Shown here: in pieces, positions 7,402 through 59,717 of the stretch
Position numbering within the stretch: position 1 is the stretch's first letter
Layout of the letters: the number at the start of each line of letters is the position of its first letter
Virus record (IMG/VR): IMGVR_UViG_3300042544_001590
Location: 1 to 64,000 of that record
Reading direction: 5' to 3' (one strand)
DNA: 64,000 bases
Notes under the pieces: generated by a model
Database searches by the model: none
Told to the model about the DNA's origin: nothing
What the model saw: the letters and a program-made list of their open reading frames with translations, nothing else
Position numbers and translations under genes: made by a program

Positions 7402-7600
7402 TGAGTGAGAAATATGAAGCGGTAATCGGGGGTTATACCTTTCTGATGAAGGATGACGGGGTGATTGAGGTATGGGCAGGGTTGGATAGCGAATATCCAG
7501 AATCCTTCATATATGTGAAGGATGGGAGCGTTTTAGATCGGAAATCTTTTGAGATGGAGATCATGGATTTTTGCCTTAAAAACTAGAATATAATTGTGGC

Positions 7601-15367: not shown

Positions 15368-16186
15368 ATGAAGAGTATAAAATATCCCGAAAAAGCTGGA
15401 ATTTATAAATTAACCTGTAAAACGAGTGGAAAATTCTATATAGGGAAATCAATAAATATAAGAGATAGAATAAAACGACACGAAAAATCAGCCAAAGACC
15501 TTAAAAATAAATGTCGTATAGTAAAAGCTATAAGAAAATATGGGTGGGACGATTTTGAAGTTGAAATATTGGAAATTTTTGAAGATTTTAATAGAGAATT
15601 TGATGATGCAAAATTATTTTTAATAGAATCTGATTATATAACCAAGCTCAATGCAACTGATGAAAAAGTTGGGTATAATATCTTAACTTGTAATTCTGGT
15701 AAAAACGGGATGAAACATACTGATGAAACAAAGGAAAAACTTAGAAAAGCTAATTTGGGAAAAAAACACAGCGAAGAAACTAAAAAAATGATGTCTGAGA
15801 AATTTTCCGGTGAAAACCATCCGATGTGGGGTAAACATTACACTAAAGAAGCTTTGGTCAAAAAGTCTGGTGAAAATTCATGTTGGTATGGAGTAAAGGG
15901 GGAATCCCACCCTACTTATGGGCGCAAACACACACCAGAAGCTATAAAAATATTAAAAGAAAAAAGACAATTACAAGACACAACACCTTTCAAGAGAAAA
16001 ATAAAACAAATCAATTTAGAAAATGGTGAATGTGTTAAAATATGGGATAGTATTAAAGAGGCTGCTATGTTTTTTGGTGTGAATCCGACTTCCATATCTG
16101 AAGTGTGTAGTAAGAGGAAAAAAGGAAATAGTGTGACAAAAAGATGTAAGGGGTATGGTTGGGAATATTGCGATGTTAAAAACTAG
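15368..16186 (+). CDS. Free-standing GIY-YIG homing endonuclease with NUMOD3 repeats and C-terminal NUMOD1-like HTH
   Basis: AGIYKL...FYIGKS..R...H, GYN, repeated KHT/SEETKxK and GENHPMWGK; AT-rich; TAAATA 6 nt before ATG. Confidence 0.92.
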   Translation: MKSIKYPEKAGIYKLTCKTSGKFYIGKSINIRDRIKRHEKSAKDLKNKCRIVKAIRKYGWDDFEVEILEIFEDFNREFDDAKLFLIESDYITKLNATDEKVGYNILTCNSGKNGMKHTDETKEKLRKANLGKKHSEETKKMMSEKFSGENHPMWGKHYTKEALVKKSGENSCWYGVKGESHPTYGRKHTPEAIKILKEKRQLQDTTPFKRKIKQINLENGECVKIWDSIKEAAMFFGVNPTSISEVCSKRKKGNSVTKRCKGYGWEYCDVKN

Positions 16187-16457: not shown

Positions 16458-16895
16458 ATGAAAATTGAAATCACCACGGAGGAGAAACAGAAAATTCTCA
16501 AATTCTCCACAGACATCAGACTAAAATTTGATGATGGGGAAGTTGAACCCATTCATAATTCAAAGGAATCCAAAGATTTTGTTCGTGAATTTCTAAAGAG
16601 TCGTGGAATCGGAAAACCGAGGGTTTATGAACAGGGAATCTATGCTTTTGGTGATGTTGGGATGCACACTGACAATCTCTCCCCAAAATCTGCAATGACC
16701 ATGTGTTTATTGATTTCCGGTAGTGGTAAATTGTTCGCTTGGGATGGTAAAAAGGTAAATGAATGTCGTGTCAACAAAGGAGATGGTGTTATTTTCGATT
16801 TCAATCTCCCCCACTCATTTGAAGCTGATAAAACATGCCAAGCATTTCTAGTGGACATTCCAAAAAAATATAAGAAAAATTTACTGAATGAGTGA
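16458..16895 (+). CDS. Cupin / 2OG-Fe(II) oxygenase-like protein
   Basis: MHTD ... GDGVIFDFNLPHS (HxD...H). Confidence 0.5.
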   Translation: MKIEITTEEKQKILKFSTDIRLKFDDGEVEPIHNSKESKDFVREFLKSRGIGKPRVYEQGIYAFGDVGMHTDNLSPKSAMTMCLLISGSGKLFAWDGKKVNECRVNKGDGVIFDFNLPHSFEADKTCQAFLVDIPKKYKKNLLNE

Positions 16896-17991
16896 TATGA
16901 AACTCCCCGACACTGAACAATTTAATTTTAAAGATGTCACCATTGCTGGGGATGACTGTTGGCTGATTACACCATCCAATATGGCTACCAAATGGACTGA
17001 CGACAATGCACGATTTCGTTCATGTATTGTTCGTAAGTCGGATAACTTTGTAGTGTCGCAAGGATTTTCCAAATTTACCAACTTTGGGGAGAAGCCTGAT
17101 TTTCAACCATGGGATAATTCATGGAAGATTGAAGCAATACACAAATTAGACGGAAGTCTTTTGATCGTTTCAAAGTATAAAGGGGAACTTATCATAAGAA
17201 CCCGTGGAACTGTTGATGCTCGTCAAATGGCTAATGGTCATGAGATTGATCTTCTTATAAAGAAATATCCATTCTTTTTCAATTTCTTCACCAATCATAC
17301 TCCCCCAACAATGACTCAATCTATATTGTTTGAGTGGACTACCCCCAAAAACATAATTGTGATCAGAGAACATGAAACTCCCACATTGACATTAGTTGGT
17401 GTTGCATCACATGATGTATATGAAACATATTACGCTGGTCAAGAATGGTTGGATGATTTCGCCAAAGTATATGGTCTTACCCGTCCTGAAAAGTATGAAT
17501 ACAATTCCATTGAGGAGTGCATCCTTGATGTATCTGCTTGGAAAGGAAAGGAAGGAGTGGTTTTATACTCTCCCAATGGTCAAACATTAAAGAAAATCAA
17601 AGCAAGCCTCTATTGCGAACTTCATAAAATCGCAACGGGAATGCGAACCATTTCCAATGTGCTTGATGTGTTCATGGAGTCTCCCCGATTTGTGGAATAC
17701 CAAGATTTTTATAATTTCCTCTGTAACTCACTTGATTTTGAAATCGCGGAACGTGTCAAAGATGATATCGCCAAAATCACGGAAGCATACGGCAAATTCA
17801 TCCATTCCGTCAACACCATTGAACGTGCCATGGGATACATCTCCAAGCTGGACTCCCGTAAGAAGCAAGCAATGGCTATTCAGGAGCATTGGGACGGCTG
17901 GATGGTTCCGGTTAGCTTTTCATTGCTTGACAACAAGCCAATCGATGATAAGCTGGTGAAGAAATCAATGGAGAAGCTACTGAATCTATGA
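16888..17991 (+). CDS. RNA ligase 1 (T4 Rnl1-like)
   Basis: KFTNFGE, KLDGSLLI (motif I), FEW, KEGVVL (IV), KIK (V). Confidence 0.8.
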   Translation: MSDMKLPDTEQFNFKDVTIAGDDCWLITPSNMATKWTDDNARFRSCIVRKSDNFVVSQGFSKFTNFGEKPDFQPWDNSWKIEAIHKLDGSLLIVSKYKGELIIRTRGTVDARQMANGHEIDLLIKKYPFFFNFFTNHTPPTMTQSILFEWTTPKNIIVIREHETPTLTLVGVASHDVYETYYAGQEWLDDFAKVYGLTRPEKYEYNSIEECILDVSAWKGKEGVVLYSPNGQTLKKIKASLYCELHKIATGMRTISNVLDVFMESPRFVEYQDFYNFLCNSLDFEIAERVKDDIAKITEAYGKFIHSVNTIERAMGYISKLDSRKKQAMAIQEHWDGWMVPVSFSLLDNKPIDDKLVKKSMEKLLNL

Positions 17992-33536: not shown

Positions 33537-34553
33537 ATGAAACATTACTCATTCCCTAAAATCCGCCAATACCATCAAGTTTTGCGCGATCTGAAACTTC
33601 ATCACCAATACGTTGGCAAGGATGAAATTGGCAATCCCATTTTTGATTCCAGTATCAAGCTTCCCGTAGTGGATTTCGTTGGATATACGAAACTTCATGG
33701 GACGAATTCCTCCATCGTGTTCTCTTATGATGGGTCGTTCTATTGCCAATCAAGGGAGAACGTCATCGATGAGGTGAAAGACAATGCCGGATTTGCCCAT
33801 TGGGTGAATAAGGAAGGAAAGGGAATTTTTGATCTGATCAAGCACCATTTTGATGGGTGGGATGGTAAGGTTGTGTTGTATGGTGAATGGTGTGGAGGTT
33901 CAATTCAAAAGGGTGTTGCCCTGAATGAGCTTCCCAAGATGTTTGTGGTGTTCGGTGGTAAAAAAGTGTGTATTGTTGATGCGGAGACTTCAGAATGGTT
34001 TGATACTTCCCAAATTCAAGATCATTCCATTAATGTCTATAACATCACGGAAGCTCCGCAATATCGCATTTGGGTTGATCTTGAACGTCCTGATAAAGCG
34101 ATTGAGCAAATGACCGCATGGGTTGATGAAATCGATGTGGAATGCCCTTTCGCTAAAATGTTGGGTGTATCTGGACATGGGGAAGGTATCGTATTTCGAG
34201 AAGCTACTAAACATTCGTTTGATAACGCATTCAAGGTAAAGGGAGAATCCCACTCCAAATCCAAGATCAAAAAGCTTCCAACAGTAGATGTGGTCAAGAT
34301 GGATGGTATCCAAGAAGCAGTGGAAACCCATTGCCATGAAGATAGGATGCAACAAATCTACGATAAGATCGTCCTGACGGAAGCCGATAAGGTTCCCCAA
34401 AAGATTGGTGATTTCATCAGGCTATTGATTGAGGACGCATGGATTGAAGAAGGGGATAGCATCAGAGCATCCGATATCTCTCGTAAAGAATTTGGTGCTG
34501 CGGTATCCAAAAAAGCGGCAAGATGGTTTCAAGCTAAAATTTCTGAATTTTAA
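33537..34553 (+). CDS. RNA ligase 2 (Rnl2-family)
   Basis: KLHGTN (motif I), QSR, LYGEWCGGSIQKG, GEGIV, FKVK. Confidence 0.82.
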   Translation: MKHYSFPKIRQYHQVLRDLKLHHQYVGKDEIGNPIFDSSIKLPVVDFVGYTKLHGTNSSIVFSYDGSFYCQSRENVIDEVKDNAGFAHWVNKEGKGIFDLIKHHFDGWDGKVVLYGEWCGGSIQKGVALNELPKMFVVFGGKKVCIVDAETSEWFDTSQIQDHSINVYNITEAPQYRIWVDLERPDKAIEQMTAWVDEIDVECPFAKMLGVSGHGEGIVFREATKHSFDNAFKVKGESHSKSKIKKLPTVDVVKMDGIQEAVETHCHEDRMQQIYDKIVLTEADKVPQKIGDFIRLLIEDAWIEEGDSIRASDISRKEFGAAVSKKAARWFQAKISEF

Positions 34554-38762: not shown

Positions 38763-38774
38763 CAATTTTCCAAT

Positions 38775-38973
38775 GGAGCAACGGTGTGGAAAATCTTAGA
38801 CACACAGCAGAGTCGCTTGAAGTATCTCTGGATTAGTTTATCAGGCAAGAAAGAAGGAAAGACGAAACCTTCCCCCTGACGCACGAGTAGCCAGTCGTGG
38901 TGAAAGCCAGATATGTTGAGTAGATCGTGGGCATGATCAGCCTAGAGTGGGGGTAAGACCCACTTGCTCCACC
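38775..38973 (+). ncRNA. Unknown ~200-nt RNA with tRNA-like acceptor, D-like and T-like arms
   Basis: GGAGCAA/TTGCTCC+ACC; GTGT/ACAC; GTGGG-7nt-CCCAC; internal TCAGG/CCTGA, GAAGG/CCTTC, CACGA/TCGTG; no convincing ORF. Confidence 0.7.
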
Positions 38974-39060
38974 TTTTTAATAAATAAAACACTAACCACC
39001 GCGAAAATGCGTGGCCTGACGGCAAATGGAAGCTCTACCAAGTGGGGGACTGGCATTCTG

Positions 39061-39183
39061 CATAACGCCGATGTGATGGCATCGCTGCCGAGAGCGAGCG
39101 TCGATCCTCCAACCAAACACTGATATGCCAAACGACTCCGACAACACAGCGGGCAGCGATTGTCCATCCACGCCTTGTTCGCT
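39061..39183 (-). mobile_element. Integron attC-like site 1
   Basis: AAC-GCCGATGT-GATGG-CATCGCTGCC ... GGCAGCGAT-TGT-CCATC-CACGCCTT-GTTCGCT: imperfect palindrome with unpaired spacer and extra bases on one arm. Confidence 0.7.
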
Positions 39184-39427
39184 TTTTCGAGCCACTTGGG
39201 AGGAGAGAGATGGTAAAATGGAACCTGTGAATACTCCTGATCTCTTCGTGTGGGCCTGCGTGAACACAAAAACCGGAGAGGTGGAGATGACGGAAATCCA
39301 GCCCTTCGACGACGATCTCAATGAGAACCTTGTGGAAGGGTGGGAGTGGAGACGCTTCCGACTCATTGAAGCGAACGTCCAAGGCCATGCGACGGCGCGC
39401 AGTGGCCCGAATCCACCACCGACTTGA
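39125..39427 (+). CDS. Cassette-borne hypothetical protein
   Basis: GC-rich; starts inside attC1 loop and ends inside attC2 loop. Confidence 0.6.
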   Translation: MPNDSDNTAGSDCPSTPCSLFRATWEERDGKMEPVNTPDLFVWACVNTKTGEVEMTEIQPFDDDLNENLVEGWEWRRFRLIEANVQGHATARSGPNPPPT

Positions 39428-39464
39428 ACGGCTAGTTCCCGTTGCCATGACTCCCTTGTTAGCC
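39370..39464 (-). mobile_element. Integron attC-like site 2
   Basis: AGCGAAC-GTCCAAGG-CCATGCGACGG ... CCGTTGCCATG-ACTCCCTT-GTTAGCC. Confidence 0.65.
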
Positions 39465-39475
39465 TTCTTAATTTT

Positions 39476-39691
39476 ATGACCTACATACCAGACCCAATCG
39501 AAAGAGGCGAGATGCGTGCCGAGGCCGCATACGATGAAATGATCCAACCTGACGGCAGGATGAAATGCCCGTGCGGAGAACTGTTCGACCCCGACAGCGA
39601 GGGCGGAACACTCAGCCCCGATCCGTATGCAATGCCCGTCTGCGGGAAATGCTGCGAGGAGTATTTTTCTCAGGCTAACAGTAACTTATGA
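39476..39691 (+). CDS. Cassette-borne small zinc-binding hypothetical protein
   Basis: CPCG...CGKC; GC-rich; bounded by GTTAGCCT (39458) and AGGCTAAC (39672). Confidence 0.65.
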   Translation: MTYIPDPIERGEMRAEAAYDEMIQPDGRMKCPCGELFDPDSEGGTLSPDPYAMPVCGKCCEEYFSQANSNL

Positions 39692-57619: not shown

Positions 57620-57688
57620 ATGAACGAAACAATGACCGAAGCGGATATCCAAGACATGATTGACTATCACAACGGGATCGTTAAATGA
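57620..57688 (+). CDS. 22-aa peptide MNETMTEADIQDMIDYHNGIVK
   Basis: ATG at module +1; paralog at 58993 differs synonymously. Confidence 0.55.
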   Translation: MNETMTEADIQDMIDYHNGIVK

Positions 57689-57694
57689 TACTTT

Positions 57695-57769
57695 GGTGCG
57701 GTAGTCCAGCGGCAGGAGACAAATGACTTAAAATCATTACAGGGTCGGTTCGAATCCGACTCGCCACTC
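57695..57769 (+). tRNA. tRNA-Leu(UAA), short variable loop, defective acceptor (possible pseudo-tRNA)
   Basis: AATGA-CTTAAAA-TCATT, GTCGG-TTCGAAT-CCGAC; acceptor needs a bulge; no CCA. Confidence 0.65.
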
Positions 57770-57900: not shown

Positions 57901-58557
57901 ATGACAACAATTGAATTTTGCAGCAAATACTCTCTTAGTGAAATGTGTGAGGAAGGACGGAATTTCGCTTTGAGTCTTGAAACAATGTCTCAAGTTTGGG
58001 AAAATTGTAGAAATCCGAGTTGGCTTTTCTGGATTCTCGACAAATGCAAGCCGCTGGATAAGGAACAATCCGTGAGATTGTCCATTGCATTTGCGGAAAC
58101 TTGTCTTATTAATGTTCCCGATGGAGAAACTCGCCCCAAACTTGCGATTGAAGCCTCAAAAGCATGGCTTGATAATCCATGCGAAGAAACAGAGTTAGCA
58201 GCAACATCAGCAGCAGAGTCAGCATCAGTAGCAGCATCAGCAGCATGGTCAGCACGGTCAGCAGCAGAGTCAGCAGCACGGTCAGCAGCATGGTCAGCAT
58301 GGTCAGCACGGTCAGCAGCACGGTCAGCAGCAGAGTCAGCAGCATGGTCAGCAGCAGAGTCAGCAGCATGGTCAGCAGAGTCAGCAGCAGAGTCAGCAGC
58401 ACGGTCAGCAGCACGGTCAGCAGCATGGTCAGCACGGTCAGCACGGTCAGCAGCAGAGTCAGCAGCATGGTCAGCAGCAGAGTCAGCAGCACGGTCAGCA
58501 GCACGGTCATCGCAATGCAATACGATACGGGAAATGATTTCAAACCCCTTCGGTTAA
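57901..58557 (+). CDS. Protein with low-complexity SA(A)W/R/E repeat tract
   Basis: GTCAGCA(GCA) 9/12-bp units ~58195-58510; N-terminal RP..AIEA..AWL domain. Confidence 0.75.
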   Translation: MTTIEFCSKYSLSEMCEEGRNFALSLETMSQVWENCRNPSWLFWILDKCKPLDKEQSVRLSIAFAETCLINVPDGETRPKLAIEASKAWLDNPCEETELAATSAAESASVAASAAWSARSAAESAARSAAWSAWSARSAARSAAESAAWSAAESAAWSAESAAESAARSAARSAAWSARSARSAAESAAWSAAESAARSAARSSQCNTIREMISNPFG

Positions 58558-58992: not shown

Positions 58993-59061
58993 ATGCCTGA
59001 CAATATGTGCGAATACGATATCCAAGACATGATTGACTATCACAACGGGATTGTTAAGTAG
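58993..59061 (+). CDS. 22-aa peptide MPDNMCEYDIQDMIDYHNGIVK
   Basis: ATG at module +1; paralog of 57620. Confidence 0.55.
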   Translation: MPDNMCEYDIQDMIDYHNGIVK

Positions 59062-59070
59062 AATTTAAAT

Positions 59071-59147
59071 GGTTGCGTAGCCCAACCGCTAGAGGCCACA
59101 GACTTAAAATCTGTTCAGTATGGGTTGGAATCCCATCGCAACTACCA
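59071..59147 (+). tRNA. tRNA-Leu(UAA), short variable loop, C19-G56 swap
   Basis: GGTTGCG/CGCAACT-A-CCA; ACAGA-CTTAAAA-TCTGT; T-loop TTGGAAT. Confidence 0.85.
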
Positions 59148-59173
59148 TTTTTTAAAAACTAAAACACAATAAC

Positions 59174-59464
59174 GCTGAAGTGCTGGCACCCGCTGTCGAA
59201 AAAACTACAACGAAGCCCCAAATGTCTGATACCGAAAAACTTGCGGAAGCCACTGATAGCGGGTTGCTCCAGCCACGCCTTGTTCGGCTTCTTCCGTGTC
59301 CGTTCTGCGGTTCCGAAGCTCGCATTGGACAAGGCGACGGATGGCCGGGGGAAACCGTGGTCGAGTGCAGCAATGACGAAAACTGCCGCGCTCAAATGTC
59401 CTGCATCTGGGGCGAGAAGAATGAAACCGAACTCTGGAACGCCCGCGCAAATCCTCAGCCGAAC
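59174..59464 (-). mobile_element. Single integron-type cassette (attC 59171-59288) inserted in a module spacer
   Basis: AAC-GCTGAAGT-GCTGG-CACCCGCTGTC ... GATAGCGGGTTG-CT-CCAGC-CACGCCTT-GTTCGGC; far end GCCGAAC; excision restores CACAAT-AACAAC-ATG. Confidence 0.8.
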
Positions 59465-59626
59465 AACATGAAACAACTTGCAACTCTCGCCTTCTATGCG
59501 AAATACGCCGGATGGCAATCCTATCACAAGTCCATGCTTCCCCAAGTCAAAGCCCTAACACGCAAGGGATTTCTGGAAATGAATGAGCATGGGCAAGCGC
59601 GGTTCACGGGAAAGTGTCAAGATTAA
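59222..59626 (+). CDS. Lar-family restriction-alleviation-like protein fused in frame to the resident gene (ATG 59468)
   Basis: LLPCPFCGSEA...VEC....C...WNAR. Confidence 0.65.
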   Translation: MSDTEKLAEATDSGLLQPRLVRLLPCPFCGSEARIGQGDGWPGETVVECSNDENCRAQMSCIWGEKNETELWNARANPQPNNMKQLATLAFYAKYAGWQSYHKSMLPQVKALTRKGFLEMNEHGQARFTGKCQD

Positions 59627-59642: not shown

Positions 59643-59717
59643 GCGCTTGTAGCTCAGTGGTTAGAGCGAGCCTCTCATAAAGGCTGGGTCGATGGTTCAA
59701 TCCCATCCGAGCGCACC
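59643..59717 (+). tRNA. tRNA with CAU anticodon (elongator Met or Ile2)
   Basis: GCGCTTG/CGAGCGC, AGCCT-CTCATAA-AGGCT, ends ACC. Confidence 0.88.

Follow-up and report, generated by a model that had tools for sequence, protein, structure and literature searches.

How does a GC-rich stretch of foreign DNA come to lie between the promoter-like signal and the start codon of a small gene in a large lake-water phage? We addressed this question for a 64,000-nt window, the first 64 kb of the 207,489-bp IMG/VR contig IMGVR_UViG_3300042544_001590, which was recovered from lake water and has no relative in INPHARED, where only tRNA matches were obtained. The initial annotation proposed that an integron-type cassette carrying a Lar-like gene had been integrated precisely into a phage promoter module by an integron integrase. 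The sequence observations behind this proposal are all confirmed and the interpretation is supported, although catalysis by an integron integrase (IntI) is inferred and the terms lytic and anti-restriction, also used there, remain assumptions.

An insert within a promoter-like module

The window contains 93 plus-strand copies of TAAAAACTA, whereas 0.65 would be expected by chance. Each copy is followed by 3 nt and a hexamer of the TAYAAT/CATAAT/TAAGAT type, and in 72 of the 93 cases an ATG stands exactly 6 nt after the hexamer. The TAA of the module is usually the stop codon of the preceding gene, and two tRNA genes begin at the first base after such a hexamer. We therefore infer that the module is a phage-specific promoter with transcripts starting right after the hexamer. 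The module at 59153 is one of the exceptions. Its upstream half (59153-59170) consists of TAAAAACTA (59153-59161), AAA and the hexamer CACAAT (59165-59170), followed by AAC and then by foreign DNA. The insert occupies 59173-59463 (equivalently 59174-59464) and comprises 291 nt at 57% GC, whereas the window as a whole has 41% and the flanks 44-45%. Removal of 59174-59464 restores TAAAAACTA AAA CACAAT AACAAC ATG with the exact 6-nt spacing, so that the empty site would read CACAATAA-CAACATG. The rest of the module spacer (AAC) and the resident 52-codon gene (ATG at 59468, stop at 59624-59626) follow at 59465-59626. The frame is open from 59180 to 59626, and the insert is thus fused in frame to the resident gene, the predicted product being 148 aa from the GTG at 59180 or 134 aa from the native ATG at 59222. 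As an in-frame fusion has a one-in-three chance expectation, we draw nothing from it.

The junctions are not an assembly artefact. A 512-nt contig from an independent lake-water run spans 59017-59528 with no differences, two further runs cover one or both junctions, and the 148-aa product is on record from four contigs, including an NCBI assembly. The resident 52-aa protein has stand-alone homologs of 90, 88, 84 and 67% identity. In three phage lineages these are located directly behind intact modules, as in the contigs L170-172, which read TAAAAACTAAAACATAATCAAACC-ATG, while in the fourth lineage the gene is preceded by a Shine-Dalgarno sequence. It could be argued that the fusion is ancestral and that relatives lost the N-terminal domain, or that the junction is an assembly chimera. 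The only point in favor of this is that the exact isogenic empty allele gave no hits in IMG/VR. No joint skipping the insert was found in four read sets, in which the module-to-module joints are de Bruijn artefacts of the repeated module. The 16-point GC jump, the nucleotide-level relatives of the insert in unrelated GC-rich contigs, the four lineages with the stand-alone gene and the independent runs make both alternatives extremely unlikely.

The gene carried by the insert (59222-59463) encodes a Lar-like zinc-ribbon protein and has no stop codon of its own. Its start at ATG 59222 is assigned by homology, since two related proteins begin with the same 20 residues (MSDTEKLAEA...). The 81-aa product scores 30.0 bits against PF14354 (Lar_restr_allev; cut-off 28.6), although only 28.0 bits when embedded in the 148-aa fusion, and it matches PHROG 599 with an E-value of 7.8e-8. 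The function of the gene is inferred. The same cassette was not found elsewhere: genomes gave no protein relative, metagenomes gave one partial hit, and the exact 20-mer of the 3' end of the cassette occurs only in the window's own contig.

A structured attC-type element family

Nucleotide similarity of the insert to three GC-rich contigs, L180, L181 and L182, begins at 59172 and covers the 48 nt before the ATG and about 70 nt after it (blastn identity of 86.5% over 126 nt to L181 and 89% to L180). A 22-nt core of this region retrieved 13 more viral contigs and a Luteolibacter MAG. The copies share a discrete element, which on the plus strand reads NNNNAAC, 6-7 unpaired nt, GTGCTGG-CAC, an inner stem that differs between copies but stays complementary, a loop holding the stop of the upstream ORF and the ATG of the downstream ORF, the return arm G-T-TG-CT-CCAG-C-CAC with three bulges, 5 unpaired nt (GMCTT) and GTTNNNN. 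Conservation stops at the two boxes. The same nucleotides are read in two different frames in different copies (LLQPRLV against VAPATPC), so selection acts on the nucleic acid. In an alignment of 13 copies the main helix is 96% paired, four pairs show compensatory change, and the covariation score is 0.239 against 0.084 for shuffles, with 0 of 500 shuffles as high. GTT is invariant in 13 of 13 copies, and 12 of the 13 read AAC when the copies with a 7-nt spacer are re-registered by eye; in the alignment itself AAC is seen in 8-11 of 13 per column because those copies are shifted by one base.

In the window the site begins with the AAC triplet (59171-59173) of a hybrid R' box, in which ACAATAA derives from the phage and C from the cassette. 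The site (59174-59288) then comprises the spacer GCTGAA (59174-59179), L' GTGCTGG (59180-59186), the inner stem (59187-59197), a variable loop (59198-59254), the 3' arm (59255-59276) with bulged T59264, C59267/T59268 and C59273, the spacer GCCTT (59277-59281) and R'' GTTCGGC (59282-59288). A covariance model built from the 13 copies scores it 122 bits, but this copy is a member of the training set. The hairpin proposed in the initial annotation does not fold better than shuffled sequence, as DNA folds of 59165-59295 on both strands gave z of +1.15 and +0.30. Folding energy is misleading here because the 57-nt loop dominates it, and the reality of the structure rests on the comparative evidence. 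Rfam has nothing for this region or for the second cassette region described below.

The layout corresponds to the published description of the recombining bottom strand of attC sites such as attC_aadA7 and VCR (Nivina et al., 2016, PMC5027507), with AAC in R', where cleavage occurs, GTT in R'', unpaired spacers (5-6 nt as published, 5-7 nt here), bulged bases beside L'' with a 6-bp interval (4+2 bp), the last one a T, and a variable terminal structure. The element is 96-143 nt long (118 nt at the 59-kb site; model matches span 94-143 nt including short flanks), against a published range of 57-141 bp. It differs in that the bulged base in L'' is C instead of the usual G, the middle bulge has two bases, and the lower stem is strongly conserved in sequence.

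The right end of the insert, GCCGAAC (59458-59464; GCCGAA from the cassette and C59464 from the target), is the exact complement of its own R'' box at 59282-59288, and the two form the core of a perfect 10-nt inverted repeat. In the circular form of the cassette the 3' end GCCGAA would join C-GCTGAAGTG. In 36 of 45 copies the exact reverse complement of the copy's own GTTNNNN box is found within 700 nt downstream, mostly coinciding with the start of the next copy, while controls give 12% with the boxes of other copies and 2.5 of 45 (5%) with random NNNNAAC. This is the classical signature of integron cassettes, whose two ends rebuild a fully paired R box on circularisation. GTTCGGC is, however, the commonest right box in the family (14 of 45), and the match in the window is therefore family-typical rather than unique. 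Arrays alone cannot tell which box is the crossover, but the single cassettes in the window and in the related phage contig L072 carry the attC at the 5' end and only the box at the 3' end. This places the crossover at AA|C, beside the arm without bulges, as in attC. In the window the inferred crossover lies between 59172 and 59173, which is G|TT on the minus strand. The insert does not have the structure of a transposon, IS or MITE: the only inverted repeat pairs the right end with an internal box 170 nt away and not with the left end, no transposase is present, and the shared AAC is the crossover triplet.

Illegitimate, microhomology-mediated capture of a random fragment from a co-infecting GC-rich phage, namely the 3' end of a DnaC/IstB-like gene plus a Lar-like gene, is suggested by the AAC at both junctions and by L180, where the homologous stretch overlaps the end of an IstB-like gene. 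Nevertheless, this is very unlikely. Both ends coincide with cassette boundaries defined independently in 36 of 45 other units, the same unit structure recurs at five or more other sites in this phage group, and the end of the supposed upstream gene is itself part of the discrete element, read in different frames in different copies.

Arrays, an integron integrase and recurrence in related phages

The covariance model finds same-strand arrays in other viral contigs, with seven copies in L199, seven in L194, five in L190 and four each in L196 and L180. These arrays lie in contigs with DnaB, portal, capsid and methylase genes. In the Luteolibacter MAG contig L184, an array of at least four copies is located 640 nt from a 326-aa ORF, just past its 3' end. 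This ORF is an integron integrase according to NCBIfam (TIGR02249, 412.7 bits against a cut-off of 265) and is also named so by NCBI. The attC top strand runs in the same direction as intI in this contig, and the cassette ORFs run towards intI. In two close relatives of this integrase no copies of the attC family were seen in the little flanking DNA available.

In 22 of 24 array cassettes a plus-strand ORF starts at an ATG in the loop of its own attC and ends inside the next attC, often overlapping the next ATG. The genes are thus on the recombining strand, the reverse of canonical cassettes, which have the gene on the top strand with the attC at its 3' end; that organization is usual but not a requirement for recombination. 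It could be asked whether the hairpin is only an mRNA structure, a translational-coupling or processing signal around the stop/start junction, with genes exchanged by ordinary homologous recombination between conserved arms. The position of the stop and the ATG in the loop in 22 of 24 cassettes and the G.U-type pairs on the coding strand (T59176.G59286 in the window, and in the copy in L195) speak for such a role. However, it does not explain the conserved AAC and GTT boxes set off by unpaired spacers, the unit-specific complementarity of the two boxes flanking each gene, the single units inserted at GWT sites with empty alleles, or the neighboring IntI. We regard this as very unlikely to be the sole explanation, but the two roles are not exclusive.

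The window holds a second site, with two cassettes at 39066-39678. Cassette A (39066-39375, 310 nt) has AAC at 39064-39066, an attC-type site extending to R'' GTTCGCT at 39177-39183, an ORF at 39125-39427 and the end box AGCGAAC at 39370-39376. The model match (39057-39188) scores 62.6 bits with an E-value of 2.5e-16, and this copy was not used in training. Cassette B (39376-39678, 303 nt) has a weak attC-type site (39367-39469, E-value of 0.14) with R'' GTTAGCC at 39458-39464, an ORF at 39476-39691 and the end box GGCTAAC at 39673-39679. The minus-strand target reads ACTG|TTATGC at this site and GTTG|TTATTG at the 59-kb site. Phages with 98.8% and 96.4% identical flanks (L034 and four others) carry a different array, 1332 nt against 613 nt, between the same outer junctions. 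In L072, a 248-nt cassette is located right after a module hexamer (target G|AT), and the contig L167 holds the orthologous empty module. There the cassette ORF ends in a TGA overlapping the resident ATG rather than fusing. Three further contigs, L030, L080 and L126, carry three different cassettes at one junction. All eight sites are co-oriented with the modules.

Origin of the cassette and relation to known systems

The best explanation, which we hold with fairly high confidence, is that 59173-59463 is a single integron-type gene cassette, one attC site plus one small gene with no integrase nearby, a SALIN in the terminology of Loot et al. (bioRxiv 10.1101/2022.09.11.507474). We infer that an integron integrase, most likely supplied by an infected host, recombined the folded plus strand of the attC site with a secondary 5'-G|TT-3' target on the phage minus strand, 3 nt after the hexamer of the module and 3 nt before the ATG of the 52-codon gene. 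As the gene is written on the recombining strand, it points the same way as phage transcription, and having no next attC in which to end, it reads on into the resident gene. That the fusion is made and that it alleviates restriction are likewise inferences.

No integron integrase was found within the 64-kb window (tblastn best E-value of 0.7; Pfam searches of 20 large ORFs), which leaves out the other 143 kb of the contig. A search of viral contigs with one IntI protein gave only a distant hit, and a search with an alignment gave 562 relatives, with neither the window contig nor the array-bearing contigs among the best 80. A tyrosine recombinase fragment was found in a contig that is not a relative, having two modules, about the chance level. 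It is possible, although unlikely, that the enzyme is not a host integron integrase but a recombinase encoded by these phages, in the remainder of the contig or in co-infecting temperate phages that carry the arrays. In favor of this, the array-bearing viral contigs examined show no IntI near the arrays, the arrays are located inside phage replication and methylase regions, and IntI homologs do occur in many IMG/VR stretches. On the other hand, the site layout matches IntI substrates feature by feature, a true IntI lies beside an array in L184, and no alternative recombinase was seen next to any array.

Insertion by IntI at genomic 5'-GWT-3' sites, with expression where a resident promoter is near, has been shown experimentally in bacteria (Loot et al., bioRxiv 10.1101/2022.09.11.507474). 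Similarly, the cassette described here is a single attC plus gene far from any intI or attI, with the crossover at a GWT target and expression expected only because a resident promoter lies just upstream. Here, however, the event is natural, the recipient is a phage genome, the target is the few bases between a promoter-like hexamer and a start codon, and the predicted product is an in-frame fusion. Clusters of attC sites without integrase (CALINs) have been reported with the general attC model in 21 isolated phages, both temperate and virulent (Qi et al., 2023, PMC9892861). The two-cassette array at 39 kb is a CALIN by that definition, and methylase and anti-restriction-type cargo is present in both cases. 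In contrast, we describe one sequence-conserved attC family in uncultured lake phages, with empty alleles, cassette turnover between near-identical strains and insertion into promoter modules. These phages thus appear to borrow genes repeatedly from the integron cassette pool, the gene sampled here being Lar-like and possibly involved in counter-defence. The reversed gene polarity of the family challenges the usual picture in which strand choice exists to place genes sense to Pc, and the association of the family with a Verrucomicrobial integron hints at host range.

Tentatively, there may be a distinct class of integron cassettes built for phage genomes, in which the genes begin and end inside attC loops on the recombining strand, an array is one continuous chain of overlapping, translationally coupled small ORFs, and a single cassette dropped at a GWT site behind a phage promoter is expressed at once. 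Transcription of such a gene would expose the recombining strand as the non-template strand, so expression and mobility could be coupled. Under this still doubtful reading, large lake phages with 24-nt promoter/start modules, together with GC-rich temperate-type phages carrying arrays of seven or more, would use host integrases to trade counter-defence genes.

The promoter-like module and its surroundings

The genome-wide module, found at 93 sites between window positions 7577 and 63888, reads TAAAAACTA-N3-hexamer-N6-ATG, and its TAA doubles as the stop codon of the previous gene. In addition, tRNA-Met and tRNA-Arg, at 59643 and 59738, begin at the first base after the hexamer. This suggests an 18-nt phage-specific promoter with transcripts starting right after it and with 6-nt leaders, and no paper describing such a module was found.

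The window also has a duplicated unit (57620-57769 and 58993-59147), in which a 22-codon ORF, 78% identical between the copies, is followed by tRNA-Leu(taa). Window positions 57901-58557 hold a 218-aa ORF with a long low-complexity run of SAAESAAWSA-type repeats, where the GC content is locally 60%. One relative, L160 (2420-2930), has an insert of about 450 nt with a reverse-strand ORF inside a tRNA gene of the tRNA cluster, while the other relative, L163 (3440-3470), has the intact tRNA.

Integron cassettes at other sites

A second integron-cassette site, at window positions 39066-39678, holds two cassettes. Between the same outer junctions the near-identical phages L034, L039, L049, L077 and L119 carry a different array of 1332 nt. 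Just upstream of the 39-kb cassette array lies a 303-nt non-coding stretch (38763-39065), which is conserved in close relatives but has no Rfam match. More distant relatives (L128 and L061) have about 114 nt of tRNA-like sequence there instead.

Another cassette of the same family, 248 nt in length, was inserted right after a module hexamer in the related phage contig L072 (2918-3165), and L167 holds the orthologous empty module (2960-2986). The ORF of this cassette ends in a TGA that overlaps the resident ATG. Furthermore, three related phages carry three different attC copies (L030, 2507-2605; L080, 3297-3393; L126, 8634-8730) at one identical left junction, AATACACAA|C, which is located nine codons into a module-started gene, and the ORF reads through the attC.

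Arrays and a partial copy of the attC family

GC-rich viral contigs carry arrays of 5-7 or more cassettes of this family inside replication and methylase regions (L199, 11241-13712; L194, 143-3778; L190, 1437-2839). In these arrays the small ORFs tile head to tail, from attC loop to attC loop. In L183 (766-1200), a 41% GC contig, only the right half of the element is present. It is 92% identical over 62 nt and sits in the middle of a 144-aa ORF with no left arm, and it may represent a decayed or recombined cassette.

Homing endonuclease and RNA ligase genes

Elsewhere in the window, a GIY-YIG plus NUMOD3 homing-endonuclease gene is found at 15368-16186, and two RNA ligase genes lie at 16888-17991 and 33537-34553.
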